In this document: piece by piece, positions 33,344-64,000 of the stretch
Position numbering within the stretch: position 1 is the first letter of the stretch
How the letters are laid out: each line of letters begins with the position of its first letter
Origin: Ranitomeya imitator
Taxonomy: Eukaryota
Length of the DNA stretch: 64,000 nucleotides
Direction: 5' to 3'
Assembly (NCBI RefSeq): GCF_032444005.1
Contig: NC_091288.1
Location: forward strand, 204,290,001 to 204,354,000
Translations under genes and position numbers: made by a program
The notes under the pieces: generated by a model
Told to the model about the DNA's origin: nothing
The model's database searches: none
Seen by the model: the letters and a program-made list of their open reading frames with translations, nothing else

Positions 33344-33378
<35 letters not shown>

Positions 33379-34647
33379 CCCAGCCATCTTTTATTGCTGG
33401 AACTTTAATCTCCAGGATGTACATCACCGAGACTAGCCACGTCGGTGACACAACTCTCCCACCCAGGACTTTACCACCTGCTTCTTTACACCCTTTACTA
33501 GTTGTGTGTGTTGCTGCAGCCCCTTATTAGAATATTCTGTGTCCTGATGGCAGGTTTTATATAAATGTCCTAATATATGAGGTGGTTCACAGTAAGGAGG
33601 ATGCGTATAGAAGGAGCTCTGCTATGTCTCCACAGGAAGCCTCCTACAGCCCGGAGATTGACACGTTGCCACCAAGGAGCGGAGTGGAGACGTTACTACT
33701 CACCATCTGGCTGTCCAGCTGCGGGCAGCTTCTCATGCCAGGGCAGCACATCAGCCGCTCCGCCGCACTACCAATGGCCAACGCTTACAACGCTCTGCTC
33801 GTCTGGCTTCTCTCCCTGGTAAGAAAGATAAGTGCCCCCTCCTGCTCCAGGCCAATATCCAGCATCATCTAGTCATGGTGTCCTCTCTCACTGTAGGTTG
33901 CCCCTTTAAACCCCCAGTACAAGGGCGATGCCCCCTTCCAGGTGCTGGGACTTCAACAGATGTGGCGGGAGGAAGGATTGGCGCTGTATGTCTGTGTCTC
34001 GCCACGAGACGTTCCGGCCCACAAGAGTATCAGGATGCTAAAGTACAAGGTAGGAGGACTGTGGTTAGATGTGTGATTATTGGGGGGGCAAGGTCACAAT
34101 CGGTTTTCACTTTTTTTCCCTGTCAGTTCCCATGAAATGTTGATTCTTGCTCTTTTGTGCGGTGCCGTTCCTCTATTATTCCTCCTGGAAGTTCTTGTAT
34201 AAATCGACTACTGGCCGTTGCAATACTTGCTGCTGTCATATCATTTCTGCAATATTATGTCATAATGTACTTGTATTACCCATAAAATTACAGTTCAGGA
34301 ACTTTGTGCTGTTCCGTCCCTCTGTTATTCCCCCTGAAAATGGCAATTCAAATTGACAACGGGGCGTTCCCAGGAGGATTCTGTGACGTGGGATTTATGG
34401 TTTTGCCTCGCAGACACAGACACAGGGCTTATGTGGGACGTCAAGGTTCTACCAGCATGTGTCCACGTTCCTGTCGCACCACACCCTGCAGAGCGTCAGC
34501 AGCTGGAAGGAGGGCGTCATACAGCAGCTGCAGGGGCGGCTGTTCCCGTTACACCTGGAGGTCCCCGCCATGAGGCTAAGCAGCATAGTAATGCTAAACC
34601 CCGACCCACAGGTAACAAAGACCACCCTCAGATGGCTATGTATGTGA

Positions 34648-34703
<56 letters not shown>

Positions 34704-37700: not shown

Positions 37701-40700
37701 GATGCCCCCCCCGTGCTCCGATGCCCCCCCCGTGCCCTAATCTCCCCCCCTTATACTTACCGGGCCTCCCGGTGTCCGTCCGGCCGTCTTCTCCCTGGGC
37801 GCCGCCATCTTGCAAAATGGCGGGCGCATGCGCAGTGCGCCCGCCGAATCTGCCGGCAGGCAGATTCGTTCCAAAGTGCATTTTGATCACTGAGATAGGT
37901 TATATCTCAGTGATCAAAATAAAAAAATAGTAAATGACCCCCCCCCCCCCTTTGTCACCCCCATAGGTAGGGACAATAAAAAAATTAAGAATTTTTTTTT
38001 TTTTTTCCCACTAAGGTGAGAATAGGGGTAGGGTTAGGGTTAGGGTATTTTCAGCCATTTTAACCCTAAAAAACTTCCTAGAAAACACACAGACTCTGCA
38101 TAGAAAACTGCATAAAAAAAAGGATAAAAAAACGCACCAAAAAAGCACAAAAAAAAGGACCAAAAAAAGGACCTGCGTTTTCTGCCAAGAGCTGCGTTTT
38201 CAGTCCTGAAAAAAAAAGGATGGAAATCAGGAACGTGTGAACATACCCTAAGGTGCCCACACATTGGTCTTCCTGGATTTCCATATTTGTGGATTTGGGA
38301 GCATGTATAATGTCCTTGTTCTTGGACTTCCTGGTATCAGGTCATCGGCTCTTATGGATTCGTCGGGCAGAAAAGATACCAACTTGTTTAGTTCCTTGTA
38401 ATTGTCTTGTGTAGAATCCGACTCCAATTTTTTGTAGTAGCGTGTGTCCATAAGTTGTCTGTATAACACAGCTCCTTATCCCGCTCCATACTTGCATATG
38501 TCCGCCGTACACAAGCAGCGCGGTTTGAGAATTTCATTACAGCCCCCCTAACACCATGGGACCCCGGCTCTTGCCCACTGATAGCCCTGCGAATAGACCT
38601 AGAGATAAATGATATAATTCTGACTGCCACTAGGGGGAGCCGTGGTTTTATTATTGAGTATGTGAGCTCCCCCTAGTGGTGGCCGGCTGGTTGTGCAGAT
38701 TCTGTAATGAGAATCGTCTCCTGAAATGCCAGAATATTATTAGTTTTTCCTGTTTTGCCATGTTCCAATGATATATGACCGGGACGCTGGTTTTCTGTTC
38801 TCATTGTCGCCCCTTGTCAGGCTGTGGAGAAGGTTTTCTGTTCCCCCTGCGGATTCTTCTGGCAGACGATGGACACTGAGGAGAAGCTGAGTCCTCTGGC
38901 CCCGGATTTCTTCGAGGATGGTGAAATGGAGGTGGGAATTTGTCTTCCAAGCACTTATGTAAATCCCAGACCTGCTGTTCTGGACCTCGGAGAAGTCGCT
39001 GACAACTCGCCTTTTCCTGGCTCCTATTACTGGTTGTCACTCAGCCGATTGTCGCATTGAGTCTTCCTGGACTCACTTGGGTCTCTCCTCTTTCGTTAGG
39101 TGGTTACAGTCAAAATGTATGACACCCTCCTGCAAGATTCTCTGGCTTTCCACCATGCTTTACACCTCATCCTCACCGCAGGGCTGGACGTATGTGGAAT
39201 AAGACTGCTGTACCCACAATGCTCTGCTCTGTGTCCCAAAATATGTAAGTATGAGTCTATATATATACCTGTCATACATAGACCCTCCTAATATTGTGGG
39301 GGTCTTGTGCTCCAGCTCTGACCCTTCGTGGCCGGATCACTGGATCCCGTGGTCCCGAGCGTGGCTCGCTGACGCCTCAATGGATCAGACTTGTGTTTCC
39401 GGATCAGTCAGATTCCGATCTGGAGAATTTGGAAAGAAGTCCATTATCCTACTGTGAGGGGCACTGCTGTTAGGGAACCCCACTGCCATGACGGGGTGCT
39501 TGGTCTATACAATGTTAGGCGGGTGTCACATGATGGCAGGACACAAGGGTCCCAGCAGGACATTGCCCATCACTCGGCCTCCGCCATCTTGTCTTCTTCC
39601 CATAGTGCATCCTGGTCCCATCTCTTTACAGGTAAGACCTCTTTCACACTTCAGTTGTTTGGCGTCAGTCTAAAACCGCCATTTTCCTCAAATAATGGAT
39701 CTGTCAATTTTTTTTGACGGATCCGTTATTTTCCCATAGACTTGCATTAGCGACGGATTGTGACGGATGGTCGTCCGTTCCATCCGCCTTGCGACGGATC
39801 CGTCGAAATTTGACGGACGTTTTCTGAAAATAGACGGACATTGAAACGTTTTTTGTCAATGCCGAAATGGCGGATCGCGACGGATCCGTCGCGTCCGCCA
39901 TTCCATAGAATGGCCGCCTATGGGCGACGGATCCGCCGCAACCGTTTTTTCGACGGATCCGTCACCCCAATCCGTTTTTTCAATTGCGCATGCTCCAAAA
40001 AGTAGATACTTTTCCCAGACAACCCCCAAGTAACGGATCCGTCAAAAAAACGGATCCGTTAGAACCGTTTTCTCAAAAATTGTGACGGATCCGTCAATCC
40101 GTCACTATGTCGGTAGTGACTGACGCCAAACAACTGAAGTGTGAAAGAGGCCTTAGTGACGCACACGCATCAACGGTCCATATGATGGAAATAGGGATTC
40201 ATCAGACCCAGCGCCTTCTATCATTACTGCTGGTCCAGGTCTGATGCTCGTGTGCCCAGTGTAGTTGGTGGACAGGGGTCATCATGGGCGCATTTAAGGC
40301 TCCATTTACAGCAAGCTGCGATGCTCTGCACCTCTCTATAACATCCCGCAGTAACAGTGTTATCAGTTTCTGCATGTGAAGATCTCCTGTGTATTTAGAC
40401 CAGACAGACTAAAGGTACCGTCACACATAGCGACGCTGCAGCGATACCGACAACGATCCGGATCGCTGCAGCGTCGCTGTTTGGTCGCTGGAGAGCTGTC
40501 ACACAGACCGCTCTCCAGCGACCAACGATGCCGGTAACCAGGGTAAACATCGGGTTACTAAGCGCAGGGCCGCGCTTAGTAACCCGATGTTTACCCTGGT
40601 TACCATCGTTAAAGTAAAAAAAAACAACCACTACATACTTACCTACCGCTGTCTGTCCCCGGCGCTGGGCTTCTCTGCCCTGTGTAAGCACAGCGGCTGG

Positions 40701-43700
40701 AAAGCAGAGCGGTGACGTCACCGCTCTGCTTTCCGGCTGCCCGGCGCTCACAGCCAGAGCAGAGAAGCACAGCGCCGGGGACAGACAGCGGTAGGTAAGT
40801 ATGTAGTGGTTGTTTTTTTTAGTTTTACGCTTGTAACCAGGGTAAACATCGGGTTACTAAGCGCGGCCCTGCGCTTAGTAACCCGATGTTTACCCTGGTT
40901 ACCAGCGAAGACATCGCTGAATCGGCGTCACACACGCCGATTCAGCGATGTCAGCGGGAGAGCCAGCGACGAAACAAAGTTCTGGACTTTCTGCAGCGAC
41001 CAACGACAGCACAGCAGGGGCCTGATCGCTGCTGCCTGTCACACTGGACGATATCGCTAGCGAGGACGCTGCAACGTCACGGATCGCTAGCGATATCGTC
41101 TAGTGTGACAGTACCTTAACCCTCACTGCAAAGATCAATGAGCTTTCGGTGATCATGATATTGTGGTCAGTTTTACTGGTCATCCTCCTTTGGACCACTT
41201 TTAGTAGGTACTAAGACTTGCCATATACCGAGAATACCCTCCAGGACCAGCCGTATACCGGGAACACCCACAGGACCTGCCGTATGCCAGGAACACCCCA
41301 CAAGACCTGCCGTATACCGGGAACACCCCACAAGACCCTCCGTATACCGGGAAGACCCCACAAGACCTTCCGTATACCGGAAACACCCCACAGGACCTGC
41401 CGTATACCGGGAACACCCCACAAGACCTGCTGTATACCGGGAACACCCCACAAGACCTGCCGAATACCGGGAACATCCCACAAGACCTGCCGTATACCGG
41501 GAACACCCCACAAGACCCACCGTATACCGGGAAGACCCCACAAGACCTGCCGTATACCGGGAACACCCTCCAGGACCCGCTGTATACTGGGAACCCCCAC
41601 AAGACCTGTCCTATACTGGGGACACCCTACAAGACCCACCATATACTGGGGACACCCCACAAGATCCACCGTATACCGGGAAGACCCCACAAGACCTGCC
41701 GTATACCGGGAACACCCCACAGGACCTGCCGTATACCGGGAACACCCCACAAGACCTGCCGTATACCGGGAACACCCCACAAGACCTGCCGTATACCGGG
41801 AACACCCCACAAGACCCGCCGTATACCGGGAACACCCCACAAGACCCGCCGTATACCGGGAACACCCCACAAGACCTGCCGTATACCGGGAACACCCCAC
41901 AAGACCTGCCGTATACCGGGAACACCCCACAAGACCTGCCGTATACCGGGAACACCCCACAAGACCTGCCGTATACCGGGAACACCCCACAAGACCTGCC
42001 GTATACCGGGAACACCTGCCGTATACCGGGAACACCCTCCAGGACCCGCTGTATACTGGGGACATCCTACAAGACCTGTCATATACTGGGAACCTCCACA
42101 AGACCTGTCCTATACTGGGGACACCCTACAAGACCCACCATATACTGGGGACACCCTCCAGGACCTGCTGTATACTGGGGACACCCTCCAGGACCCGCTG
42201 TATACACCCCACGAGATCTGCCATTTTGAAGGTAGCTCAGACGCTTACCCATCACAATTTGGCCCTGGTCTCAGTCACTCACATCCTTAAGGGATGTGAC
42301 AGCTCTCCAGCGACCAAACAGCGACGCTGCAGCGATCGACATCGTTGTCGGTATCGCTGCAGCGTCGCTGAGTGTGAAGGTACCTTTACACTTTTCTGTT
42401 TTTCCACCTTCCAGCACATCACGGAGACCTGACCAGTCACTTGGTGATAGGTGATAATCTCTCCCCCTGATCGGCGCCGTTGTCACCAGATTATCTTGTC
42501 ATTCATTGCGGCTGTCAGTGGCGATGGCCGCTNNNNNNNNNNNNNNNNNNNNNNNNNNNNNNNNNNNNNNNNNNNNNNNNNNNNNNNNNNNNNNNNNNNN
42601 NNNNNNNNNNNNNNNNNNNNNNNNNNNNNNNNNNNNNNNNNNNNNNNNNNNNNNNNNNNNNNNNNNNNNNNNNNNNNNNNNNNNNNNNNNNNNNNNTTTA
42701 GTCAGTCAGCAATAGTGCAAGTTCCACCACTTAAAAAGACGAGAGGCGTCTGTAATTTACATCATAGGTAGACCTCAACTATGGGAGACAAACTGAGAAA
42801 AAAAAATCCAGAGAATCACATTGTCTGTTTTTTTAACATTTTATTTGCATATTATGGTGGAAAATAAGTATTTGGTCAGAAACAAAATTTCATCTCAATA
42901 CTTTGTAATATATCCTTTGTTGGCAATGACAGAGGTCAAACGTTTTCTGTAAGTCTTCACAAGGTTGACACACACTGTTGTGGGTATGTTGGCCCATTCC
43001 TCCATGCAGATCTCCTCTAGAGCAGTGATGTTTTTGGCTTTTCGCTTGGCAACACGGACTTTCAACTCCCTCCAAAGGTTTTCTATAGGGTTGAGATCTG
43101 GAGACTGGCTAGGCCACTCCAGGACCTTGAAATGCTTCTTACGAAGCCACTCCTTCGTTGCCCTGGCGGTGTGCTTTGGATCATTGTCATGTTGAAAGAC
43201 CCAGCCACATTTCATCTTCAATGCCCTTGCTGATGGAAGGAGGTTTGCACTCAAAATCTCACGATACATGGCCCCATTCATTCTTTCATGTACCCGGATC
43301 AGTCGTCCTGGCCCCTTTGCAGAGAAACAGCCCCAAAGCATGATGTTTCCACCACCATGCTTTACAGTAGGTATGGTGTTTGATGGATGCAACTCAGTAT
43401 TCTTTTTCCTCCAAACACGACAAGTTGTGTTTCTACCAAACAGTTCCAGTTTGGTTTCATCAGACCATAGGACATTCTCCCAAAACTCCTCTGGATCATC
43501 CAAATGCTCTCTAGCAAACTTCAGACGGGCCCGGACATGTACTGGCTTAAGCAGTGGGACACGTCTGGCACTGCAGGATCTGAGTCCATGGTGGCGTAGT
43601 GTGTTACTTATGGTAGGCCTTGTTACATTGGTCCCAGCTCTCTGCAGTTCATTCACTAGGTCCCCCCGCGTGGTTCTGGGATTTTTGCTCACCGTTCTTG

Positions 43701-46700
43701 TGATCATTCTGACCCCACGGGGTGGGATTTTGCGTGGAGCCCCAGATCGAGGGAGATTATCAGTGGTCTTGTATGTCTTCCATTTTCTAATTATTGCTCC
43801 CACTGTTGATTTCTTCACTCCAAGCTGGTTGGCTATTGCAGATTCAGTCTTCCCAGCCTGGTGCAGGGCTACAATTTTGTTTCTGGTGTAGTTTGACAGC
43901 TCTTTGGTCTTCACCATAGTGGAGTTTGGAGTCAGACTGTTTGAGGGTGTGCACAGGTGTCTTTTTATACTGATAACAAGTTTAAACAGGTGCCATTACT
44001 ACAGGTAATGAGTGGAGGAAAGAGGAGACTCTTAAAGAAGAAGTTACAGGTCTGTGAGAGCCAGAAATCTTGATTGTTTGTTTCTGACCAAATACTTATT
44101 TTCCACCATAATATGCAAATAAAATGATAAAAAAACAGACAATGTGATTTTCTGGATTTTTTTTTCTCAGTTTGTCTCCCATAGTTGAGGTCTACCTATG
44201 ATGTAAATTACAGACGCCTCTCATCTTTTTAAGTGGTGGAACTTGCACTATTGCTGACTGACTAAANNNNNNNNNNNNNNNNNNNNNNNNNNNNNNNNNN
44301 NNNNNNNNNNNNNNNNNNNNNNNNNNNNNNNNNNNNNNNNNNNNNNNNNNNNNNNNNNNNNNNNNNNNNNNNNNNNNNNNNNNNNNNNNNNNNNNNNNNN
44401 NNGGACGTTCGCCCTTTTCTTTCCAGACGTCGTTCCTTTTTCCTACGCCAGACGAGATGGCGAGATCCGCCCAGTCCTGGTCCTGGCACTTCGTGGCTTC
44501 CATGCATTGAAGATTTGGGACGACCTATCAGGCCCCTGTGACCCGCAGCTCGCCCGTCAGACAGACCCGGACTCACTGAGCGCTCTCTACGGTCTCACAA
44601 AGGAATCTCCCCTCCTGCATTATTCCCGCACGTCCGGCAATGTGATGCGAGACCTCTGCCTTTGGTTCGGGGGCAGAATACCCGGTAATGGTGTCCTCAA
44701 TACTAGACCTTCGTACTGGTCAGGAAGGAGCGTCCCGCCCAGGTAGTGAGGCTTCGTTTTATCTTATTATGTTCTTTATTATTATTATTATTTTATTTTT
44801 ATTTTTATTTTTTTAGCTCTCGGAGCCCGACCGAAATGCAATGCCGCCCTCCTGCTCTGCTGACAGCGACTACGAGGGGTAAGTCAGACAGTGCCCGGTA
44901 TGGATGTACTACTATGATGCCCATTCTTATAGCGGGGGTCTCTGGAGCCTTTGTCTGCGTCTGACTGTGTATGATGGGAGTTGTAGTTTTGTAACCACTG
45001 GAATGGGAGTGATAAAGCGCGGGTATAACCTGAGACTGTCATGTTGGCCCCTACAGGTGATGTTTTTCTGGTGGTCTCTCCTGCGGTGCCTCCGTCCGCC
45101 TATGGGGATTTGATTGACACCTGCCACCAGCGAGGATTTGCCGTTCATGGTATCCGACGCCTTCGTCTCGCTGCTAAACGAGGAGCCATGCTGAACATGT
45201 CTGCTGCCCAGGTAGGATGTAACATACATAGTAACATAGTAACATAGTTAGTAAGGCCGAAAAAAGACATTTGTCCATCCAGTTCAGCCTATATTCCATC
45301 ATAATAAATCCCCAGATCTACGTCCTTCTACAGAACCTAATAATTGTATGATACAATATTGTTCTGCTCCAGGAAGACATCCAGGCCTCTCTTGAACCCC
45401 TCGACTGAGTTCGCCATCACCACCTCCTCAGGCAAGCAATTCCAGATTCTCACTGCCCTAACAGTAAAGAATCCTCTTCTGTGTTGGTGGAAAAACCTTC
45501 TCTCCTCCAGACGCAAAGAATGCCCCCTTGTGCCCGTCACCTTCCTTGGTATAAACAGATCCTCAGCGAGATATTTGTATTGTCCCCTTATATACTTATA
45601 CATGGTTATTAGATCGCCCCTCAGTCGTCTTTTTTCTAGACTAAATAATCCTAATTTCGCTAATCTATCTGGGTATTGTAGTTCTCCTATCCCCTTTATT
45701 AATTTTGTTGCCCTCCTTTGTACTCTCTCTAGTTCCATTATATCCTTCCTGAGCACCGGTGCCCAAAACTGGACACAGTACTCCATGTGCGGTCTAACTA
45801 GGGATTTGTACAGAGGCAGTATAATGCTCTCATCATGTGTATCCAGACCTCTTTTAATGCACCCCATGATCCTGTTTGCCTTGGCAGCTGCTGCCTGGCA
45901 CTGGCTGCTCCAGGTAAGTTTATCATTAACTAGGATCCCCAAGTCCTTCTCCCTGTCAGATTTACCCAGTGGTTTCCCGTTCAGTGTGTAATGGTGATAT
46001 TGATTCCCTCTTCCCATGTGTATAACCTTACATTTATCATTGTTAAACCTCATCTGCCACCTTTCAGCCCAAGTTTCCAACTTATCCAGATCCATCTGTA
46101 GCAGAATACTATCTTCTCTTGTATTAACTGCTTTACATAGTTTTGTATCATCTGCAAATATCGATATTTTACTGTGTAAACCTTCTACCAGATCATTAAT
46201 GAATATGTTGAAGAGAACAGGTCCCAATACTGACCCCTGCGGTACCCCACTGGTCACAGCGACCCAGTTAGAGACTATACCATTTATAACCACCCTCTGC
46301 TTTCTATCACTAAGCCAGTTACTAACCCATTTACACACATTTTCCCCCAGACCAAGCATTCTCATTTTGTGTACCAACCTCTTGTGCGGCACGGTATCAA
46401 ACGCTTTGGAAAAATCGAGATATACCACGTCCAATGACTCACCGTGGTCCAGCCTATAGCTTACCTCTTCATAAAAACTGATTAGATTGGTTTGACAGGA
46501 GCGATTTCTCATAAACCCATGCTGATATGGAGTTAAACAGTTATTCTCATTGAGATAATCCAGAATAACATCCCTCAGAAACCCTTCAAATATTTTACCA
46601 ACAATAGAGGTTAGACTTACTGGCCAATAATTTCCAGGTTCACTTTTAGAGCCCTTTTTGAATATTGGCACCACATTTGCTATGCGCCAATCCTGCGGAA

Positions 46701-52700: not shown

Positions 52701-55700
52701 AGCAGAGCTGAACGTGTCAGATGTAGCAGAGCTGAACGTGTCAGATGTAGCAGAGCTGAACGTGTCAGATGTGAACGTGTCAGATGTAGCAGAGCTGAAC
52801 GTGTCAGATGTAGCGGAGCTGAACGTGTCAGATGTAGCGGAGCTGAACGTGTCAGATGTAGCAGAGCTGAACGTGTCAGATGTAGCAGAGCTGAACGTGT
52901 CAGATGTAGCAGAGCTGAACGTGTCAGATGTAGCAGAGCTGAACGTGTCAGATGTAGCAGAGCTGAACGTGTCAGATGTAGCAGAGCTGAACGTGTCAGA
53001 TGTAGCAGAGCTGAACGTGTCAGATGTAGCAGAGCTGAACACGTCAGATGTAGCAGAGCTGAACACGTCAGATGTAGCAGAGCTGAACACGTCAGATGTA
53101 GCAGAGCTGAACACGTCAGATGTAGCAGAGCTGAACACGTCAGATGTATCTCCCAGCTGTCCTGCTGTATTATCTAACCTTGCCTTAGTTATCGCAATAC
53201 ACAATAAAAGTAATTCACACTGAGCTCTGATAAATCTTAGGGTAAAGCCCCGAGAAGCAGCCGAGTCACGCTGTCGTGTGGTCGCAATATGGCCTAAACT
53301 CGCAGCGGCCGAGAGCATGAGATAAACATACAGTAACTTACCTAACATTCACCCACTTGTGATGTCACAGCAGTATGTCTGAGTGATACCCACTTGTGAT
53401 GTCACAGCAGTATGTCTGAGTGATACCCACTTGTGATGTCACAGCAGCACGTCTGAGTGATACCCACTTGTGATGTCACAGCAGCACGTCTGAGTGATAC
53501 CCACTTGTGATGTCACAGCAGTATGTCTGAGTGATACCCACTTGTGATGTCACAGCAGCACGTCTGAGTGATACCCACTTGTGATGTCACAGCTGTATGT
53601 CTGAGTGATACCCACTTGTGATGTCACAGCCGCATGTCTGAGTGATACCCACTTGTGATGTCACAGCAGCACCTCTGAGTGATACCCACTTGTGATGTCA
53701 CAGCAGCACGTCTGAGTGATACCCACTTGTGATGTCACAGCAGCACCTCTGAGTGATACCCACTTGTGATGTCACAGCAGTACGTCTGAGTGATACCCAC
53801 TTGTGATGTCACAGCAGTACGTCTGAGTGATACCCACTTGTGATGTCACAGCAGTACGTCTGAGTGATACCCACTTGTGATGTCACAGCTGTATGTCTGA
53901 GTGATACCCACTTGTGATGTCACAGCCGCATGTCTGAGTGATACCCACTTGTGATGTCACAGCAGCACCTCTGAGTGATACCCACTTGTGATGTCACAGC
54001 AGCACGTCTGAGTGATACCCACTTGTGATGTCACAGCAGTACGTCTGAGTGATACCCACTTGTGATGTCACAGCAGCACGTCTGAGTGATACCCACTTGT
54101 GATGTCACAGCCGCATGTCTGAGTGATACCCACTTGTGATGTCACAGCCGCATGTCTGAGTGATACCCACTTGTGATGTCACAACAGTACGTCTGAGTGA
54201 TACCCACCTGTGATGTCACAGCAGTATGTCTGAGTGATACCCACTTGTGATGTCACAGCAGCACGTCTGAGTGATACCCACCTGTGATGTCACAGCAGTA
54301 TGTCTGAGTGATACCCACTTGTGATGTCACAGCAGCACGTCTGAGTGATACCCACTTGTGATGTCACAGCAGCAAGTCTGAGTGATACCCACTTGTGATG
54401 TCACAGCAGTATGTCTGAGTGATACCCACTTGTGATGTCACAGCAGCATGTCTGAGTGATACCCACTTGTGATGTCACAGCAGCACCTCTGAGTGATACC
54501 CACTTGTGATGTCACAGCAGTATGTCTGAGTGATACCCACTTGTGATGTCACAGCCGCATGTCTGAATGATACCCACTTGTGATGTCACAGCAGTATGTC
54601 TGAGTGATACCCACTTGTGATGTCACAGCAGTACGTCTGAGTGATACCCACTTGTGATGTCACAGCCGCATGTCTGAGTGATACCCACTTGTGATGTCAC
54701 AGCAGCACGTCTGAGTGATACCCACTTGTGATGTCACAGCAGTATGTCTGAGTGATACCCACTTGTGATGTCACAGCAGCACGTCTGAGTGATACCCACC
54801 TGTGATGTCACAGCAGCACGTCTGAGTGATACCCACTTGTGATGTCACAGCAGTATGTCTGAGTGATACCCACTTGTGATGTCACAGCAGTATGTCTGAG
54901 TGATACCCACTTGTGATGTCACAGCAGCATGTCTGAGTGATACCCACTTGTGATGTCACAGCAGCACGTCTGAGTGATACCCACTTGTGATGTCACAGCA
55001 GCACGTCTGAGTGATACCCACCTGTGATGTCACAGCTGTATGTCTGAGTGATACCCACTTGTGATGTCACAGCCGCATGTCTGAGTGATACCCACTTGTG
55101 ATGTCACAGCCGCACGTCTGAGTGATACCCACTTGTGATGTCACAGCTGTATGTCTGAGTGATACCCACTTGTGATGTCACAGCAGCATGTCTGAGTGAT
55201 ACCCACTTGTGATGTCACAGCAGCACGTCTGAGTGATACCCACCTGTGATGTCACAGCTGTATGTCTGAGTGATACCCACTTGTGATGTCACAGCAGTAT
55301 GTCTGAGTGATACCCACTTGTGATGTCACAGCAGCACGTCTGAGTGATACCCACTTGTGATGTCACAGCAGCACGTCTGAGTGATACCCACTTGTGATGT
55401 CACAGCTGTATATCTGAGTGATACCCACTTGTGATGTCACAGCAGCACGTCTGAGTGATACCCACCTGTGATGTCACAGCAGTATGTCTGAGTGATACCC
55501 ACTTGTGATGTCACAGCAGTATGTCTGAGTGATACCCACTTGTGATGTCACAGCCGCACGTCTGAGTGATACCCACTTGTGATGTCACAGCAGTGTGTCT
55601 GAGTGATACCCACTTGTGATGTCACAGCAGTATGTCTGAGTGATACCCACTTGTGATGTCACAGCAGTACGTCTGAGTGATACCCACTTGTGATGTCACA

Positions 55701-58700
55701 GCAGCACGTCTGAGTGATACCCACTTGTGATGTCACAGCAGTATGTCTGAGTGATACCCACTTGTGATGTCACAGCAGTATGTGTGAGTGATACCCACTT
55801 GTGATGTCACAGCCGCATGTCTCAGTGATACCCACTTGTGATGTCACAGCAGTATGTCTGAGTGATACCCACTTGTGATGTCACAGCCGCATGTCTGAGT
55901 GATACCCACTTGTGATGTCACAGCCGCATGTCTGAGTGATACCCACTTGTGATGTCACAGCCGCACGTCTGAGTGATACCCACTTGTGATGTCACAGCAG
56001 TATGTCTGAGTGATACCCATTTGTGATGTCACAGCCGCACGTCTGAGTGATACCCACTTGTGATGTCACAGCAGTATGTCTGAGTGATACCCACTTGTGA
56101 TGTCACAGCAGTATGTCTGAGTGATACCCACTTGTGATGTCACAGCAGTACCTCTGAGTGATACCCACTTGTGATGTCACATCAGTACGTCTGAGTGATA
56201 CCCACTTGTGATGTCACAGCAGCACGTCTGAGTGATACCCACTTGTGATGTCACAGCAGTATGTCTGAGTGATACCCACTTGTGATGTCACAGCCGCATG
56301 TCTGAGTGATACCCACTTGTGATGTCACAGCCGCATGTCTGAGTGATACCCACTTGTGATGTCACAGCAGTATGTCTGAGTGATACCCACTTGTGATGTC
56401 ACAGCAGTATGTCTGAGTGATACCCACTTGTGATGTCACAGCCGCATGGCTGAGTGATACCCACTTGTGATGTCACAGCAGCATGTCTGAGTGATACCCA
56501 CTTGTGATGTCACAGCAGCACGTCTGAGTGATACCCACTTGTGATGTCACAGCAGTACGTCTGAGTGATACCCACTTGTGATGTCACAGCAGTATGTCTG
56601 AGTGATACCCACTTGTGATGTCACAGCCGCACGTCTGAGTGATACCCACTTGTGATGTCACAGCAGTATGTCTGAGTGATACCCACTTGTGATGTCACAG
56701 CAGCACGTCTGAGTGATACCCACTTGTGATGTCACAGCAGCATGTCTGAGTGATACCCACTTGTGATGTCACAGCAGCACGTCTGAGTGATACCCACTTG
56801 TGATGTCACTGCAGCACGTCTGAGTGATACCCACTTGTGATGTCACAGCAGCTCGTCTGAGTGATACCCACTTGTGATGTCACAGCCGCATGTCTGAGTG
56901 ATACCCACTTGTGATGTCACAGCCGCATGTCTGAGTGATACCCACTTGTGATGTCACAGCCGCACGTCTGAGTGATACCCACTTGTGATGTCACAGCAGC
57001 ACGTCTGAGTGATACCCACTTGTGATGTCACAGCCGCATGTCTCAGTGATACCCACTTGTGATGTCACAGCAGCTCGTCTGAGTGATACCCACTTGTGAT
57101 GTCACAGCAGTATGTCTGAGTGATACCCACTTGTGATGTCACAGCAGTGTGTCTGAGTGATACCCACTTGTGATGTCACAGCAGTACGTCTGAGTGATAC
57201 CCACTTGTGATGTCACAGCAGCACGTCTGAGTGATACCCACTTGTGATGTCACAGCAGTATGTGTGAGTGATACCCACTTGTGATGTCACAGCCGCATGT
57301 CTCAGTGATACCCACTTGTGATGTCACAGCAGCTCGTCTGAGTGATACCCACTTGTGATGTCACAGCAGCATGTCTGAGTGATACCCACTTGTGATGTCA
57401 CAGCCGCATGTCTGAGTGATACCCACTTGTGATGTCACAGCTGCATGTCTGAGTGATACCCACTTGTGATGTCACAGCAGTATGTCTGAGTGATACCCAC
57501 TTGTGATGTCACAGCAGCATGTCTGAGTGATACCCACTTGTGATGTCACAGCAGCATGTCTGAGTGATACCCACTTGTGATGTCACAGCAGCATGTCTGA
57601 GTGATACCCACTTGTGATGTTACAGCAGCACCTCTGAGTGATACCCACTTGTGATGTCACAGCAGTATGTCTGAGTGATACCCACTTGTGATGTCACAGC
57701 CGCATGTCTGAATGATACCCACTTGTGATGTCACAGCAGTATGTCTGAGTGATACCCACTTGTGATGTCACAGCAGCTCGTCTGAGTGATACCCACTTGT
57801 GATGTCACAGCCGCATGTCTGAGTGATACCCACTTGTGATGTCACAGCCGCATGTCTGAGTGATACCCACTTGTGATGTCACAGCCGCACGTCTGAGTGA
57901 TACCCACTTGTGATGTCACAGCAGTATGTCTGAGTGATACCCACTTGTGATGTCACAGCCGCACGTCTGAGTGATACCCACTTGTGATGTCACAGCAGTA
58001 TGTCTGAGTGATACCCACTTGTGATGTCACAGCAGTATGTCTGAGTGATACCCACTTGTGATGTCACAGCAGTGTGTCTGAGTGATACCCACTTGTGATG
58101 TCACAGCAGTACGTCTGAGTGATACCCACTTGTGATGTCACAGCAGTATGTCTGAGTGATACCCACTTGTGATGTCACAGCAGTATGTGTGAGTGATACC
58201 CACTTGTGATGTCACAGCAGCTCGTCTGAGTGATACCCACTTGTGATGTCACAGCAGCATGTCTGAGTGATACCCGCTTGTGATGTCACAGCCGCACGTC
58301 TGAGTGATACCCGCTTGTGATGTCACAGCAGCACGTCTGAGTGATACCCACTTGTGATGTCACAGCTGCATGTCTGAGTGATACCCACTTGTGATGTCAC
58401 AGCAGCACGTCTGAGTGATACCCACTTGTGATGTCACAGCAGCACGTCTGAGTGATACCCACTTGTGATGTCACAGCAGCACGTCTGAGTGATACCCACT
58501 TGTGATGTCACAGCTGCATGTCTGAGTGATACCCACTTGTGATGTCACAGCAGCACGTCTGAGTGATACCCACTTGTGATGTCACAGCAGCATGTCTGAG
58601 TGATGCCCACTTGTGATGTCACAGCAGCACGTCTGAGTGATACCCACTTGTGATGTCACAGCAGCACGTCTGAGTGATACCCACTTGTGATGTCACAGCA

Positions 58701-61700
58701 GCACGTCTGAGTGATACCCACTTGTGATGTCACAGCAGCACGTCTGAGTGATACCCACTTGTGATGTCACAGCAGCACGTCTGAGTGATACCCACTTGTG
58801 ATGTCACAGCAGCACGTCTGAGTGATACCCACTTGTGATGTCACAGCTGCATGTCTGAGTGATACCCACTTGTGATGTCACAGCAGCACGTCTGAGTGAT
58901 ACCCACTTGTGATGTCACAGCAGCATGGTGACCGTGGGTCTCTGCACAGTCCGTGCTGCACTTATCCTGCTTTTCTTTGCCGTGGTGCCATTCTCTGTAG
59001 ATCTTTCCAGACCATCCCCGGGAGCACTCACCACTTCGCTGCTTCCAAACAAAAGTGGGCTCCTCCGTGTCCCAGCAGGGATGACTCAACAATGCGATAA
59101 TATGGAGTCAGCCCCCCGGGACAAGGGATCACATAGAAACAGAGCTCCGCTTTTGTGCTGGGAGATTTCTGCAGACGGAGTGCAGACGCTGCTGACATCA
59201 TGGTGCCGGGCAGCAGCTGCGGGAGTGCCCGCATACACCGATGCCCCGCTGCCGCTCTTCTGGTTCCTGACATCATTCCCTTTTTCCCGCCACACTCTCA
59301 GGATTTTAGAGGGTTTTGCTTTAGGCCACAAATGCAAGTTTTCTAATATCTATCCATGAAGTTTACGTAAAATTTCTATTTGCACATGCTCAAAAGAAAG
59401 CATCTCACTTTACAGCCTGCAGTAAAAGTTATAGCCCCATTGTAATTAGCAGGTAGATATAGAGCAGAGTGAGAGGACAGGGGGCATCTTGGAAGGGTTG
59501 GGGACATCACAGAGTGAGGGGCGCAGTCATCTGTGGATTTGGTAATGATGCCACAATGAAGGGGCATGGTTATCTTCAGGAAGGGGGTGTGGTTATCTGA
59601 AGAATGCTGATGTCACGTAGGAGGCGGAGCTATCTGAAGTGAGCTGATGATGTCACTTAGGAGGAAGAGCTTCTGAAGTGGGCTGATGATGTCACTTAGG
59701 AGGCGTGGGGTTATCAGTGGAAACCTGGTGATGTCATTGGGTGAGGGGCGGTGATGTCATGGAGTGTAGAGCAGGGTTATCAGGGGGAGCTGGTGATGTC
59801 ATTGGGTGAGGGGCGGTGATGTCACGGAGTGTAGAGCAGGGTTATCAGGGGGAGCTGGTGATGTCATTGGGTGAGGGGCGGTGATGTCACGGAGTGTTGA
59901 GCAGGGTTATTGGGGGGAGCAGGTGATGTCATTGGGTGAGGGGCGGTGATGTCACGGAGTGTAGAGCAGGGTTATCAGGGGAGCTGGTGATGTCATTGGG
60001 TGAGGGGCGGTGATGTCACGGAGTGTTGAGCAGGGTTATTGGGGGGAGCAGGTGATGTCATTGGGTGAGGGGCGGTGATGTCACGGAGTGTTGAGCAGGG
60101 TTATCAGGGGGGAGCAGGTGATGTCATTGGGTGAGGGGCGGTGATGTCACGGAGTGTTGAGCAGAGTTATCGGGGAGCTGGTGATGTCATTGGGTGAGGG
60201 GCGGTGATGTCACGGAGTGTAGAGCAGGGTTATCAGGGGGAGCTGGTGATGTCATTGGGTGAGGGGCGGTGATGTCACTGAGTGTTGAGCAGGGTTATCA
60301 GGGGGAGCTGGTGATGTCATTGGGTGAGGGGCGGTAATGTCACAGAGTGTTGAGCAGGCTTATCAGGGGGAGCTGGTGATGTCATTGGGTGAGGGGCGGT
60401 GATGTCATGGAGTGTTGAGCAGGGTTATCAGGGGGAGCAGGTGATGTCATTGGGTGAGGGGCGGTGATGCCACGCAGTGTGGAGCAGGGTTATCAGGGGG
60501 AGCTGGTGATGTCATTGGGTGAGGGGCGGTGATGTCACGAAGTGTAGGGCAGGGTTATCAGGGGGGAGCTGGTGATGTCATTGGGTGAGGGGCAGTGATG
60601 TCACGGAGTGTAGAGCAGGGTTATCAGGGGGATCAGGTGATCTCATTGGGTGAGGGGCGGTGATGTCACACAGTGTTGAGCAGGGTTATCAGGGGGATCA
60701 GGTGATGTCATTGGGTGAGGGGCGGTGATGTCACGGAGTGTTGAGCAGGGTTATCAGGGGGGAGCTGGTGATGTCATTGGGTGAGGGGCAGTGATGTCAC
60801 TGCTAATCTCCATTTCTAGATACTTTTGACCATAAAGCGCCCCTCTTCTGCTGTGAAGTCAGACTGTGGGGGGTATTTAAGAACTGGCTGGAGGAATATG
60901 AAACAATGGAGTGAAAGACGTGAATTGTATAAATATTCCCCTGCTTTAGTCGACTGTGTCTGTCCAGGATTTCCCCATTATCTTTCCCACACTGACCTTG
61001 GGGTAAACCTGTGTTTTCGCGTCCCCCCTGCCTTTCGCAGTGGGTGTGAAGCATTTTCCTGCTGTTCTGTGTCCTTCTCATTACAGATTTCTCAGCTTGC
61101 ACTCTGCACATTCGCTCCCATCCCCCAGGGCTCGCTCTCCTTAATGGGCACAGAGAGCCTGAGGCTTTGCCACCAGCTCATCCGAATGTAAGAATCGTCT
61201 ATTTTAGGGTGTTTCCATAGGAGTCCGAGGGCTTCCCCCGCGGGTGTCGTCTGAGCTCCCTGCTGCCAGTGCGTCACTAGTTCTGACAAAGCCAGATAAA
61301 TGCTGGCAAACGGGTTGTCTGGCAGGACCCTGCTTTCATTTGCCTTCAAACAAATTCCCAAAGAGATTCCCCAGTGTTCTCATCCACATAATCCTGCCCC
61401 AAAGGATCAGCATCATAAATTATAGAGGTGGTCACCCAGCTTCTCTTGGGTGCTGCATGGCAAATGTGCCTCTAAACCTCTGCAGAACCAGGCGCATGGT
61501 CAGTACAGGAGTTTGGGAATGAGGGGGGTTCTACCAATGTCTGCCGTTCTTCATCATCCTGCTACCTCACAACTGGCTAGATAGAAGTTTTTCCGCCCAA
61601 CAGAAGGAGACAAATTAATAATTAAGTGTCCTCTACACGTAGCCAACCTGTATGTTCCTATCCATTGTCAGTGCATGGTATTGATGTACCTGTAGATAGC

Positions 61701-63278
61701 ATTAATGAAGTTTCTTCCTTCTAAAGGAGAGCTACTTTACATATTCTTTACCATTGTAATACTTCACACATCAGCCGAATCTCCACAGTGACTCTGACAC
61801 ATCTATCTGCAAATAGGTGTCTAGTTTAGGTAATATCCCAATTAAAGGGGTCATTCCCATCTTCGTGGATAGGTATTGTTAGATAGAGCATGCAAAAACA
61901 AGCACTTTTGTAATTTACTGCTTATTAAAATTTTCAGCCATTGTTGAGATATTAACACTTTTCTTATCTGTACGGCTTGTTGCCTTGGAGTCCGACCACC
62001 GCTGTTGGTCTCCTAGACAACAAGGTGTAAACAAAATGAAAATGTTAATATCTCAAGAACGGCTGCAAATTTTAACAAGCAGTAAATTGTAAAAGTGTTT
62101 GTTTTCGCAAGCCCTACCCAACAAAATATCAAACTATGAAGATATGAATAACCCTTTAATGTTTTATAGATTTACATTTTTGTCTCCTCCACCCTCATCT
62201 TATGTATTAGAGGAGAGGTGGGTGTTTTTTAGTCTCTTGTTTTTTTGTTTTTCTTTCCAGGAGGAACTGAATTTCAAGGCTTCGAGCTTTTGGGTCTGAA
62301 GTGGATGCCTTCCCTGAGTTTGGCCCAGGCTACTGAGATCACCCCGTATGAGGTGGGAGAACATTTCTGGCAGGAGAGCGTGGACCAGCTAGCCTCCAAC
62401 CCAGCCTTGGTGTGTGTCCTGCGCCGCGTCCAGGCCTTCTCCAAACTAGCCGAAGTCATCAAAGAGCTTTTTCCGGGGATCGGAAAATGCCCAACCCCGC
62501 TCTTCATGTCTGCTACCCCTGAAGTGGCTTTTCGTCAGGCCGTCCATTTTTTCACAGAGAAGGACTTGGTTTCTGGTAATCAACATCTTAAGTGTCAGCT
62601 CTGCTTTTCCTTATTGTTTATGTGTCTTCCTTTTTTTCCCAACTGATTGTTCCATCCTTTGATTCCTCCAGAGATGCATAGTGACCTTGTAATCTTGCAA
62701 TTTGTTGTCCGCGGTGGACAATTTATGTTAAAAGTCTGTGTGGCCTCCATTATCAGGCTGCCTTGGGTTCCTTCTCTGCTGGTAACGCGTCCTTATAGCA
62801 ATATTCTACTTTTTAGATTCCCAAAGTCGCCCCTTTCTGAAATATCTCGCTCCTCCTGAGATCTACTGCAAGACGGAAGGTAAGTGTGACCTTAACCTTA
62901 CGGATTAGACAGTGGAGAGTAGAACCCAAGAAGGTCTTGCTCTGGAGGATCTGGCCCATCCATCCAGTACATGGATACCCTATCCATATCACTGAGATCA
63001 GTGTAATGCTTTATTTCTCCTGCGGGGGCACTGCAGGAAAATGGAACACTTGCTACTGGGTTCCTGTAGATCATCATTGATCACAGGCAGTAACTTGGCT
63101 TCTCTGCTGCATTGTTTCCCTTATTTTAGAGGCCGTTGATACAGTGAATGACTCTGGACTGCACCGTCGCACCATCATCTGTGTATACCCCAGACCTAAA
63201 TAGCATTTTTGGCTTTTCTGACAGGTGGAGGAGAGCACAGGGGACAGACGGAGTCCATATTTACATACATGCTGTCTG
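22002..63278 (+). CDS. DNAAF8: Dynein axonemal assembly factor 8 (C16orf71/Daap1), long non-mammalian form with C-terminal tandem NDK-like modules; continues beyond the window
   Basis: Exons: 22002-22085, 22198-22293, 28853-29134, 29559-29640, 29742-29879/29886, 30032/30051-30157/30209, 31950-32249, 32338/32341-32488, 33636-33818, 33897-34049, 34414-34611, 38821-38931, 39100-39244, 44427-44742, 44817-44878, 45057-45211, 47308-47443, 48183-48305, 48659-48850, 62261-62575, 62817-62879, 63225-63278 (about 1150 codons). C16orf71-like motifs: [34 protein letters not shown]. Head-to-head with ANKS3 as in human. Splicing at 29879-31950 is ambiguous. Confidence 0.82.
22838..26590 (-). CDS. L1 ORF2p (APE endonuclease, reverse transcriptase, C-terminal Cys/His knuckle), uninterrupted, 1250 aa from ATG 26590
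   Basis: Motifs [48 protein letters not shown]...HMLWQC with no internal stop. Confidence 0.95.
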   Translation of the reverse strand: MGGNVNIISWNVRGLADATKRAAIFQYLLKQRPSVICLQETHLVEEKVDMLQKKWVRRAYHSTFSNYARGVSVLVHTSTPFEEIEVKIDKDGQYVFLVCKIFNRLICIVSLYIPPPYSGKKIQEILEHMRGWVGVPFLVVGDVNNIADDHWDKSNHAPLRGDGNGTPFGNYLREIGWIDLWRVRNFSTYSYSCYSTTYGSMSRIDVALGNDGMNELLSGVEYNPRILSDHSPVRVSLKLSEQVGSRKMGWKVHPSWLQLLDMEIVGAEIEEFFKINEGSAECHVVWDTMKAYLRGILFRDISRHKTRTRTQDQAVLEELKEAEAALGAHCSRESQSRMRKAQQEVNQLYLRKAERLRAFQRASFYSEGEKVGHLLSVVASAQRDSSHVYSIKREDGTLATRGEQILEVFGKFYDKLYTSSVERGAEDMMGYLEGIDLPRLSREECEELEEPIGEEELGAALAGVAGGKAPGADGIPAEVYKVLKETLLARLSEVYNSSLERGELPSSMREAIVVVIPKADKDPQLPESYRPISLLTADIKILAKALANRLSRVIDRLVHPDQSGFMPNKSTALNLRRLFLNLQIPSDNVGRRVVVSLDAHKAFDCVEWSYLWSVLERMGFGPKFISWVQLLYSSPVAKIRVNNALSETFSLSRGTRQGCPLSPLLFALAVEPLAAKIRGSREVRGFIYGEAEEKVALYADDILLFLEDSEETLVKTEAIIEEFGSYSGLRINWDKSNMMLIDGDSGDGGGEVSSTRLKLVDKFKYLGIQITLPLTSFEELNLAPLLRRIRTKVQAWRKLHLSVIGRINLIKMIVMPQLLYVLHNSPIWISQNRFRRIRSLFGELIWGGKSPRFKQETLQRPKTEGGVALPNPWLYFLASQCQHFKGWGDVVGGTRAPCSLRSLIGTKVLSEGLEGGHFREKGSKFCTIRLIHKVWDKVKGIRGVHALTRFSPIWNNCVLQEFRQMEGFHNWREAGISRMGQILHQGRIRDFDALQEEFLLPDSELFQYRRLSHAHRAQCRRGPVEIQVDLMLDFILVGGGTKGVISGIYEFLLFSFLEEHPIRARAKWEADLGAIDNDHWESVLDYVPKISMSEPGRLSQLFVIHRAYRTPDMLFKAGLRSSSECPRCSQSDAGILHMLWQCPRLSSFWVVVLNKVGLAYGCTVPRDPLVCVLGYVEEIITDKMYKVVIARLLFIARKLIAKFWIREEPPTRRDFMKQVDHIIALERSIYVRRSKADLFDRLWNPWLESM
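26963..28074 (-). CDS. L1 ORF1p (coiled coil, RRM, CTD); probable 1-nt frameshift near 27890-27960 relative to ATG 28074
   Basis: Motifs [40 protein letters not shown]. The upstream ATG ORF (MPRRKQ...QDGA...ARLERFAR, 28074-27883) overlaps in a different frame. Confidence 0.85.
28505..28801. other. Assembly gap (297 N)
   Basis: Run of N, 52 nt upstream of DNAAF8 exon 28853. Confidence 1.
30929..31111. repeat. Foldback palindrome, about 77-bp arms
   Basis: CAAAGCACCCCCTTTATCCAATTCATAAATT... / ...AATTTATGAATTGGATAAAGGGGGTGCTTTG. Confidence 0.85.
36361..37006. mobile_element. TA-flanked MITE with CCGTATTT termini (TcMar-Tc2/Kanga-like), carrying an internal 400-bp hairpin
   Basis: TA|CCGTATTT...AAATACGG|TA. 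Removing it restores the Penelope RT frame (...[12 protein letters not shown]). Subfamily assignment is recalled from the terminus. Confidence 0.8.
37284..38248. mobile_element. PIF/Harbinger-type MITE nested in the Penelope RT
   Basis: TAA|GGCCATGTTCACAC...GTGTGAACATACCC|TAA with a 3-bp TAA TSD. Removing it rejoins ...[20 protein letters not shown]. Confidence 0.8.
39100..44742 (+). CDS. DNAAF8: DNAAF8 NDK-like module 1 (exons 39100-39244 and 44427-44742)
   Basis: [17 protein letters not shown]...[69 protein letters not shown] aligns by eye to the NDK consensus GPVVAMVLEG..AV..WR.LMGPTDP..AR...P.SLRALYG.....NAVHGSDS..SA.REI.FFF. The phase-1 junction is compatible. Confidence 0.8.
39636..40152. 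mobile_element. MITE with CTCTTTCACACTTCAGTTGTTTGGCGTCAGTC TIRs (probably Harbinger-type)
   Basis: About 35-bp TIRs with many internal GACGGATCC/GGATCCGTC motifs. The flanks are TAA/TTA, so the TSD is not exact. Confidence 0.65.
40413..41116. mobile_element. PIF/Harbinger-type MITE, same family as 5644-6403
   Basis: TAA|AGGTACCGTCACAC...GTGTGACAGTACCT|TAA, with the same two internal hairpins. Confidence 0.8.
41228..42205. repeat. 30-bp minisatellite, about 32 copies
   Basis: (CCGTATACCGGGAACACCCCACAAGACCTG)n, homogeneous in the centre and degenerate at the edges. Confidence 0.92.
42290..42384. mobile_element. Terminal fragment of the same Harbinger-type MITE family
   Basis: GACAGCTCTCCAGCGACCAAACAGCGACGCTGCAGCGA...GTGTGAAGGTACCT is the reverse complement of the 40413 left end. 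Confidence 0.65.
42533..42696. other. Assembly gap (164 N)
   Basis: Run of N abutting the Tc1 left TIR. Confidence 1.
42697..44266 (-). mobile_element. Tc1/mariner DNA transposon with long TIRs; both ends run into assembly gaps
   Basis: About 190 bp of inverted repeat is visible at each end (42697-~42886 and ~44076-44266), nearly identical, around an intact transposase. Confidence 0.93.
42895..43917 (-). CDS. Tc1 transposase, DD34E, 340 aa, intact
   Basis: Paired-like HTH N-terminus, [31 protein letters not shown]. There are 34 residues between the second D and the E (counted). Confidence 0.95.
44267..44402. other. Assembly gap (136 N)
   Basis: Run of N abutting the Tc1 right TIR. Confidence 1.
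45057..48305 (+). CDS. DNAAF8: DNAAF8 NDK-like module 2 (exons 45057-45211, 47308-47443, 48183-48305), strongly degenerate
   Basis: [37 protein letters not shown] resembles the NDK N-terminus (TL.LIKPDAV...GEII.RIE..GF.IVAMKML.L). It is followed by [11 protein letters not shown] and CFHALP. Phases 1-0-1-1 are consistent. Confidence 0.65.
45221..46732 (-). mobile_element. 5'-truncated CR1 LINE (RT C-terminal ~465 codons open) with (ACTATGTT)n tail
   Basis: Motifs [53 protein letters not shown]. 3' UTR hairpin GGCTGAACTGGATGGAC...TTTTTTCGGCC and an 8-mer tail at 45221-45250. Confidence 0.93.
47733..47849. repeat. Short hairpin, core of a probable MITE
   Basis: CATGTGCAGG...GCAGTAGCTTAGGTATCCATG / CATGGATACCTAAGCTACTGC...CCTGCACATG. 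Confidence 0.7.
48659..62575 (+). CDS. DNAAF8: DNAAF8 NDK-like module 3 (exons 48659-48850 and 62261-62575), split by a 13.4-kb intron
   Basis: [25 protein letters not shown]...[58 protein letters not shown]...[18 protein letters not shown]. Both exons have strong splice sites and a phase 1-1 junction. Confidence 0.75.
49695..49955. repeat. Foldback palindrome / MITE, about 120-bp arms
   Basis: TGTATAGGGACTTGTCCCACGATAAAAACGATACC... / ...GGTATCGTTTTTATCGTGGGACAAGTCCCTATACA. Confidence 0.85.
50617..51582. repeat. 24-bp tandem array A, about 40 copies
   Basis: (GTCAGATGTAGCAGAGCTGAACGT/AC)n. Confidence 0.93.
52308..53148. repeat. 24-bp tandem array B, about 35 copies, same unit and orientation as array A
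   Basis: (GTCAGATGTAGCAGAGCTGAACGT/AC)n, more homogeneous than A. Confidence 0.93.
53351..58926. repeat. 37-bp satellite array, about 150 copies (5.6 kb)
   Basis: (TACCCACTTGTGATGTCACAGCAGTATGTCTGAGTGA)n, with variation concentrated just after GTCACA. Confidence 0.96.
59727..60800. repeat. About 65-bp G-rich tandem repeat, about 16 copies, with degenerate precursor units from about 59590
   Basis: (GGTGATGTCATTGGGTGAGGGGCGGTGATGTCACGGAGTGTAGAGCAGGGTTATCAGGGGGAGCT)n. Confidence 0.92.
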
Positions 63279-64000
63279 GTAAGTTCTCCATCTCATTTTT
63301 TGGGGGGAAAAAAGTAGCACTTCCAACAATCTGAAGAATGGACAATCTATACAGTTGTAGAATGACCAAAGATATATCTTAAAGGGGTTGTCCAAAGAAA
63401 ACAAGCTACCACCTATCGACATGATAGATAAAGGTACCAAAATTCTTCCCATGGGTCGGACCCACGCCGATCAATAGGTTATCATCTATACTGTGGAAAC
63501 CCCTTTAAAGGGCCATGCTTTGATATTCAGTCTGCTGTTCTGTTATCAGCCATGTCAGGCTGGGTAACAGATGACACAAATCCCTTTCAATAGCTTTAAA
63601 TATATCCAAGGAGGCAATCGTTTAGTCTAGCCTTACATATTACATTGATGGTGGCCCGTCCCTTTAACTTTAAAGGGATCAGCCAACCATCGAGTGTGCA
63701 TCGGGGTGACCCAACTTTCCCCAGCATCAGATGTTGGAAGAAAAAACCGATAGTTGTTTGTCGGGTTTCATTCTTAGAGGAGGTAAGATGTCAGGCTCGG
63801 ATCTATTCTTTTTCCGCCGGAAGAACACATGCACGCTCTGCTGAATAGAGCACGCACGTGTCTAGGAACAAGCATTGAGCCCATAGCTGTCACAAGGGTC
63901 ATGGCCACCTGTAATCTAGACCTTGTTACCTGCAGTGGACACCTCCTCTTTAGCCAAACCGTGCCCCTTCGTCAGCCAGGCCCAGATTAAAATGGATGAG

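Follow-up and report, generated by a model that had tools for sequence, protein, structure and literature searches.

The stretch of DNA analysed here, called the window, comprises 64,000 nucleotides from the frog Ranitomeya imitator and is vertebrate genomic DNA with many minisatellites and transposons and three runs of N. Searching the exon at 44429-44683 against 1.84 billion protein representatives returned a set of proteins of 1400-1900 residues, of which the best relatives are named DNAAF8, DNAAF8-like or Daap1 in frogs, newt, lungfish, bowfin, paddlefish, sharks and chimaera, and the nearest found is the Hyla sarda "dynein axonemal assembly factor 8-like" protein (XP_056389962.1, 1536 aa). 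In tblastn this protein is colinear with the window from residue 42 (at 22195) to residue 1211 (at 63292), and the colinear alignment of aa 42-1206 identifies the gene as an orthologue of proteins annotated as DNAAF8. Judged from this alignment, the window carries most of the frog DNAAF8/Daap1 gene, with about 325 residues remaining 3' of its end by the length of the Hyla sarda protein. DNAAF8/Daap1 is needed for the deployment of outer dynein arms in Xenopus (PMC7785291, the only functional paper, which mentions one NDK domain in non-mammals). It ranks among the least understood dynein assembly factors, and reviews describe it as mostly disordered and as containing a domain of unknown function.

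The exon chain was assembled from tblastn with Hyla sarda, from a search for GT/AG pairs scored against the orthologue and from spliced contigs. The coding exons and the two assembly gaps that interrupt one of their introns are as follows, with M1, M2 and M3 standing for the NDK-like modules of the window and L for the domain that precedes them:

22002-22293, forward strand: start of the DNAAF8 coding sequence, with the ATG at 22002 (a ten-residue start was read) and the exon end at 22293 (AAG/GTGAGA); placed from the Hyla and Discoglossus N-termini
28853-29134, 29559-29640, 29742-29886 (or -29901), forward strand: N-terminal exons 1-3 (DAAP1/DUF4701 part)
30051-30209, 31950-32249, 32338-32488, forward strand: N-terminal exons 4-6 (DAAP1/DUF4701 part)
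33636-33818, 33897-34049, 34426-34611, 38821-38931, forward strand: exons 1-4, domain L (Hyla sarda aa 468-683)
39100-39244, forward strand: exon 5, N-terminal third of M1 (beta1-alpha1-beta2); acceptor TTAG/GTG, donor TAT/GTAAGT, tblastn
42533-42696: assembly gap, intronic (within 39245-44426)
44267-44402: assembly gap, intronic, with the acceptor of exon 6 24 nt downstream
44427-44742, forward strand: exon 6, remainder of M1 and start of the linker; Pfam, PDB, spliced contigs
44817-44878, forward strand: exon 7, 62-nt linker; contig joint 44878/45057, splice signals, Hyla sarda aa 839-858
45057-45211, 47308-47443, 48183-48305, forward strand: exons 8-10, M2 with CFHALP, 138 codons; contig joints, hhalign
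48659-48850, forward strand: exon 11, short linker and beta1-alpha1 of M3; spliced contig
62261-62575, forward strand: exon 12, remainder of M3 with LFMSAT; Pfam, hhalign, PDB profile
62817-62879, forward strand: exon 13, linker; Hyla sarda aa 1168-1189, perfect donor
63225-63278, forward strand: exon 14, last coding exon in the window (a 17-residue peptide was read from it); Hyla sarda aa 1189-1206

At the amino-terminal end of the gene, the exon ending at 22293 matches Hyla sarda aa 42-72 (tblastn and junction search), and between the ATG at 22002 and this exon end there is either a frame change or a short intron. The six N-terminal exons (28853-32488) contribute 373 open codons, colinear by the same two methods with Hyla sarda aa 72-467. 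The Pfam family DAAP1 (PF15773) gave no match to these exons when they were searched singly, nor to the whole Hyla sarda DNAAF8-like protein, and it is clear in Discoglossus, newt, lungfish, bowfin, paddlefish, shark and one transcript-derived orthologue; the DAAP1 N-terminal region is disordered and quickly evolving. A LINE that looks intact lies in the first large DNAAF8 intron (22844-28009, reverse strand) and adjoins the assembly gap at 28505-28801. Its ORF2 (endonuclease, reverse transcriptase, zf-RVT) runs uninterrupted for 1279 codons and is preceded by an ORF of 347 codons. The reverse strand upstream of DNAAF8 carries an ankyrin-repeat coding exon (12670-13119; Pfam Ank, E 5e-15), which may represent conserved synteny with ANKS3, the gene next to human DNAAF8.

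From 33636 to 63278 the forward strand carries 14 exons, all with AG/GT borders, which sum to 2194 nt (731 codons and 1 nt) without a stop; once joined and translated, they share 74.5% identity with the Hyla sarda DNAAF8-like protein over its residues 468-1206. The original prediction had described 14 phase-compatible exons with about 730 stop-free codons up to 63278, which the rebuilt chain reproduces, and the motifs that it quoted were all recovered in place on the forward strand (GPCDPQ at 44531, SLSALYG at 44573, PLLHYSR at 44609, CFHALP at 48260 and LFMSAT at 62500). Acceptors are ambiguous by 3-12 nt at two points (34414/34420/34426 and 62261/62264). Exon 6 encodes a Kpn-loop-like stretch of 21 residues and the motif LLHYSR. 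A donor for this exon at 44684 was ruled out, since the spliced contigs show 44742 followed by the 62-nt exon 44817-44878; the two models are 120 nt apart, so that the frame is kept either way. Exon 14 stands directly before beta1 of a further module (M4), which is encoded past 64000.

In spliced contigs of four public runs, six exons (44427-48850) are joined exactly as modelled. These contigs come from at least two organisms and carry the GT..AG joints 44878/45057, 45211/47308, 47443/48183 and 48305/48659, the last three of them each seen in three to four of the runs, and one contig of run X1 spans three exons and continues past 48850/51 into sequence outside 44403-49000. This read comparison covered 44403-49000, and the RNA label of the runs is a guess; the joints 32488/33636, 39244/44427 and 48850/62261, as well as the last three exons, are placed by orthologue colinearity and splice signals. 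Between the window and the contigs of a related organism there are 6 synonymous and 7 non-synonymous differences, too few to say much. The run words in common with 44403-49000 (a share of about 0.3) come mostly from intronic transposons and not from the gene, because of the repeats at 45173-46866 and 47637-48098, which reach summed contig word depths of about 2e5 in public runs and the first of which has a 474-codon reverse-transcriptase ORF on the reverse strand.

The two assembly gaps before exon 6 can be taken to hide no DNAAF8 coding sequence, because both are intronic, because the phases of the flanking exons fit (39100-39244 ends with one extra nt and 44427-44742 begins with two), because residues of the Hyla sarda protein cross the junction 39244/44427 with none missing (tblastn and junction search), and because a 601-nt contig of run X1 begins its match exactly at 44427, its 230 further letters not lying on 44403-44426. 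Between these gaps, in the same intron, there is a Tc1/mariner-type transposase (42898-43917, reverse strand) with an uninterrupted 340-codon ORF (Sleeping-Beauty-like HTH, DDE_3). The 13.4-kb intron 48850-62261 consists largely of minisatellite arrays, among them a 5.6-kb one at 53351-58927 (a 37-bp unit repeated 151 times with 95% matches), and other arrays in DNAAF8 introns lie at 50617-51583, 52307-53148, 59708-60800 and 41213-42205, with units of 24 bp (40 and 35 copies), 65 bp (17 copies) and 30 bp (33 copies).

The protein encoded by the gene can be followed past the window in its orthologues. Pfam, applied to ten of them, finds in most vertebrates DAAP1 at the N terminus together with one strong NDK domain, which in the Hyla sarda protein occupies residues 1213-1346 (M4), past the last window exon. 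As this is the sole strong Pfam NDK domain and the window exons end at residue 1206, the NDK domain published for Xenopus Daap1 is assigned to M4, encoded beyond the window, and is not to be sought among the three modules within it; M1-M3 are by this assignment cryptic modules additional to the published domain. After M4 comes a fifth NDK-like module (M5), which lacks a Kpn loop, the two together taking up aa 1213-1536 of Hyla sarda, and the earlier suspicion that another module might follow beyond the window is thereby confirmed by orthologue Pfam and hhalign results. The reading of the roughly 730 codons as NDK units needs correction for the first 211 or so (33636-38931), which are not NDK-like by hhalign, Pfam or PDB searches. 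These 211 codons constitute domain L, which is 77% identical to Hyla sarda aa 468-683 and is conserved in 29 orthologues, from sea urchin and snails to frogs, with invariant Trp, Phe and other residues; a profile of domain L compared with PDB and Pfam found no relative, the thioredoxin family included.

The block made of domain L and M1-M5 is present and colinear in Strongylocentrotus purpuratus (LOC580349), Biomphalaria and Nucella, in whose proteins Pfam finds NDK only and no DAAP1. Alignment of the orthologues demonstrates that the conservation of domain L and five predicted NDK-fold modules extends from sea urchin and snails to frogs, and a search confined to the literature turned up no paper assigning DNAAF8 more than one NDK domain. 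Within the block, M2 may be an alternatively spliced cassette: its exons 8-10 amount to 414 nt, so that skipping them keeps the frame, and a Hyperolius riggenbachi protein, 'isoform X2', is without exactly M2. No joint that skips M2 was seen in the contigs compared over 44403-49000.

The NDK nature of M1 is apparent from single-sequence searches, as its exon alone (44405-44743) reaches 27.0 bits against Pfam NDK (PF00334; E 4.4e-6), exactly the gathering score, and M1 matches NME7, NME5 and TXNDC6 chains in the PDB with a best E of 7e-10. For the other two modules such searches give little: exon 12 of M3 alone has an E of 0.029 against Pfam NDK, below threshold, single exons of M2 have no match in Pfam, and single exons of M2 or M3 find nothing useful in the PDB. 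Pairwise comparison of the window's own M1, M2 and M3 gave no significant similarity either (z 0.09, 2.28 and -0.53). Alignments of 28-33 orthologue sequences for each module were compared with M4 by hhalign, with the following probabilities and E-values:

M1 against M4: 98.6%, E 1e-15
M2 against M4: 96.5%, E 8e-10
M3 against M4: 98.0%, E 2e-13
M5 (the fifth, C-terminal module) against M4: 98.8%, E 6e-17

The controls, in which the N-terminal region and domain L were compared with NDK modules, remained below 2%. When profiles were run against PDB sequences, M2 obtained 32 matches (best E 0.03) and M3 18 (best E 4e-5), all of them NDKs aligned in register. The NDK fold consists of a beta-alpha-beta-beta-alpha-beta core with the alphaA/alpha2 hairpin. 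The folds of M2 and M3 were modelled for Hyla sarda, whose modules are 71-79% identical to those of the window (M2 74%, M3 79%). The AlphaFold model of M2 (pLDDT 90.8) superposes on solved NDKs with Z 11.9 and rmsd 2.7 over 115/147 residues, that of M3 (pLDDT 87.7) with Z 15.8 and rmsd 2.3 over 128/147, and the top 50 structural matches of the two models are all NDKs covering the full domain. From profile comparison, and in M2 and M3 also from predicted structure, M1-M3 are three NDK-fold modules, as had been claimed when three consecutive NDK-like units were proposed; M1 is supported by Pfam, and for M2 and M3, on whose fold the original prediction had staked its validity, support comes from profile-profile comparison, PDB matches and models.

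Two other accounts of the modules bear on this conclusion. That M2 and M3 might be generic ferredoxin-like alpha/beta domains, resembling NDKs by convergence and not by duplication, would fit the failure of the window's modules to recognise one another, the empty PDB searches with single exons and the E of only 0.03 reached by the M2 profile, but it is very unlikely in view of the hhalign values of both modules against M4 with negative controls, of PDB matches that are exclusively NDKs and in register, and of a structural neighbourhood made up of NDKs over the whole domain. Very unlikely, too, is an arrangement in which the NDK-module exons are a neighbouring gene wrongly joined to DNAAF8 in gene models. 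In its favour it can be said that no junction read links 32488 to 33636 (reads were compared over 44403-49000), that the sea urchin and snail orthologues have no Pfam DAAP1 N-terminus and that the window's N-terminal exons do not match DAAP1. Against it, the junction 32488/33636 is phase 0/0, its splice signals are strong and the frame stays open across it, an identical colinear architecture recurs in more than 25 species, and the cloned Xenopus cDNA has both the DUF4701 and the NDK parts (PMC7785291). In addition, an intronless 4.7-kb Logan contig encodes a 1486-aa orthologue with both Pfam DAAP1 and NDK, which provides transcript-level support for the fused architecture. The earlier view that the exons continue the DNAAF8/Daap1 frame is in this way upheld by colinearity with Hyla sarda and by the open frame across that junction.

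A single gene with NDK-fold modules leaves the matter of catalysis, for which residue equivalences were derived from the hhalign alignments and an alignment with NME7; the residue numbers used (K12, R88, T94, R105, N115 and H118) are those of human NME1. At the histidine position of M1, 33 orthologues have Tyr in 19 cases, Phe in 7 (26/33 for the two) and His in 2, the residue being His in the window frog and in Hyla; D/N, D, S, N and P stand in place of K12, R88, T94, R105 and N115, and a Kpn-like loop is present. Since most orthologues have Tyr or Phe and the nucleotide-binding residues are replaced, the His of the window frog and Hyla is probably a change peculiar to their lineage, in a site that was dead already. 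M2 has a histidine in 29/31 orthologues, with a nearly invariant Phe before it, and in the model this residue sits in strand beta4, the strand of the NDK catalytic histidine; it is predicted to occupy the catalytic position from this placement and not from a residue-level superposition. At K12, M2 carries an invariant Ser, and its Kpn motif is absent. M3 has Met at the histidine position in 26 orthologues and a short loop instead of Kpn. M4 keeps K12, R105 and N115, with Tyr for His in 24/33 orthologues and His in six, sea urchin included. Taken across orthologues, M1-M3 do not qualify as carrying the catalytic histidine of NDKs (H118), nor do they combine the nucleotide-binding residues with a Kpn loop.

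It is possible to ask whether at least one of the modules, M1 or M2, functions as a phospho-histidine kinase or a phosphotransfer domain, through which DNAAF8 would supply or sense nucleotides during dynein assembly. The catalytic-position His and Kpn-like loop of M1 in the window frog and Hyla, and the M2 His that persists in nearly all orthologues within beta4, speak for such an activity, but M1 is without equivalents of all five nucleotide-binding positions and has mostly Tyr or Phe for the histidine, M2 lacks a Kpn loop and has K12 replaced by Ser, and even the canonical M4 has more often Tyr than His, which leaves this account quite unlikely. True kinase activity in any of M1-M3 is unlikely, and the three are very probably pseudo-enzymes because other residues stand at the nucleotide-binding and catalytic positions. 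The "graded loss of the catalytic site" of the original prediction describes the sequence of this genome and does not extend across species, given the Tyr/Phe of M1 and the His of M2; of its kinase/pseudokinase scaffold, the inactive-scaffold half is favoured and the kinase half is unlikely, the residues being replaced. The best reading is one of five putative pseudo-enzyme modules, of which M4 may still bind nucleotide.

The explanation preferred here, which we consider highly probable as a whole, is that of a DNAAF8 gene in which domain L and M1-M3 precede M4 and M5 and in which the modules form an array of pseudo-enzymes serving as a scaffold. By analogy with other inactive ciliary NDK-fold proteins, such an array would bind or package outer-arm components, and it may act as a rigid multi-domain scaffold that holds them in the cytoplasm; the nearly invariant M2 histidine would then have a structural or binding role. 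Xenopus Daap1 binds Dnai2, Dnai1, Dnah9 and Nme9 and is located in the outer-arm sub-region of DynAPs, and when cut to the DUF4701 part it still localises to DynAPs (PMC7785291). Since the DUF4701 part alone reaches DynAPs, the array is not needed for localisation. NME5, NME7 and TXNDC6, the proteins recovered in the PDB matches, occur as structural proteins in axoneme structures.

A more far-reaching proposal, which is tentative and on present evidence rather doubtful, is that the ancient core of DNAAF8 is not the disordered DUF4701 region, which is what mammals retain, but a bilaterian-wide unit of domain L and five NDK-fold pseudo-enzymes, a scaffold holding dynein arms in the manner of Tetrahymena Q22MS1, in which the M2 His and the largely intact M4 would keep a nucleotide- or phosphate-sensing capacity. 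If this were true, what disappeared in mammals would be the protein's original functional core. Apart from this proposal, two-thirds of non-mammalian DNAAF8 is by the present results an ordered five-module NDK-fold array with one conserved domain, and the presence of the array in echinoderms and molluscs changes which part of DNAAF8 looks ancestral. The module boundaries are now concrete enough for deletion and rescue work in Xenopus. The array would add one more case to the growing set of inactive NDK-fold proteins with a structural part in cilia. It is a refinement of a known gene and introduces no new kind of system.

Among known systems, Tetrahymena Q22MS1 is a large cytoplasmic protein with an inactive NDK domain that binds outer arms before their delivery to cilia (Mali et al., bioRxiv 10.1101/2020.09.04.282897); according to its paper it has no homology outside the NDK domain, and it is likened to DNAAF8 by description only. 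NME7, an axonemal microtubule inner protein and thus also a ciliary protein with tandem NDK domains, is the closest of the solved sequences to both M1 (E 7e-10) and M4 (E 7e-17), but it consists of DM10 and two NDK domains, whereas the DNAAF8 array has five modules with largely replaced catalytic residues, and no Pfam DM10 match occurs in the ten DNAAF8 orthologues. NME8/NME9 (TXNDC3/TXNDC6) resemble DNAAF8 as axonemal proteins with arrays of partly degenerate NDK domains, and the highest-scoring matches outside the orthologues are chytrid proteins that bear the names TXNDC3/6 and have seven NDK repeats; the two families differ in that NME8/NME9 have a thioredoxin before the NDK repeats, where DNAAF8 has domain L with no thioredoxin match, and solved TXNDC6 matches the DNAAF8 modules more weakly than NME7 does. 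A further close system is Xenopus Daap1/DNAAF8 (C16orf71), known from a full-length cDNA with DUF4701 and NDK (Lee et al. 2020; PMC7785291), which binds outer-dynein-arm subunits in DynAPs and belongs to the same family as the frog gene, having in common with it a disordered DAAP1/DUF4701 N terminus and, in non-mammals, a long C-terminal NDK extension. As published, Daap1 is vertebrate-specific and has one NDK domain 'similar to Nme8 and Nme9' (PMC7785291), whereas the extension described here comprises domain L and five predicted NDK-fold modules, which are also found in sea urchin and snails.
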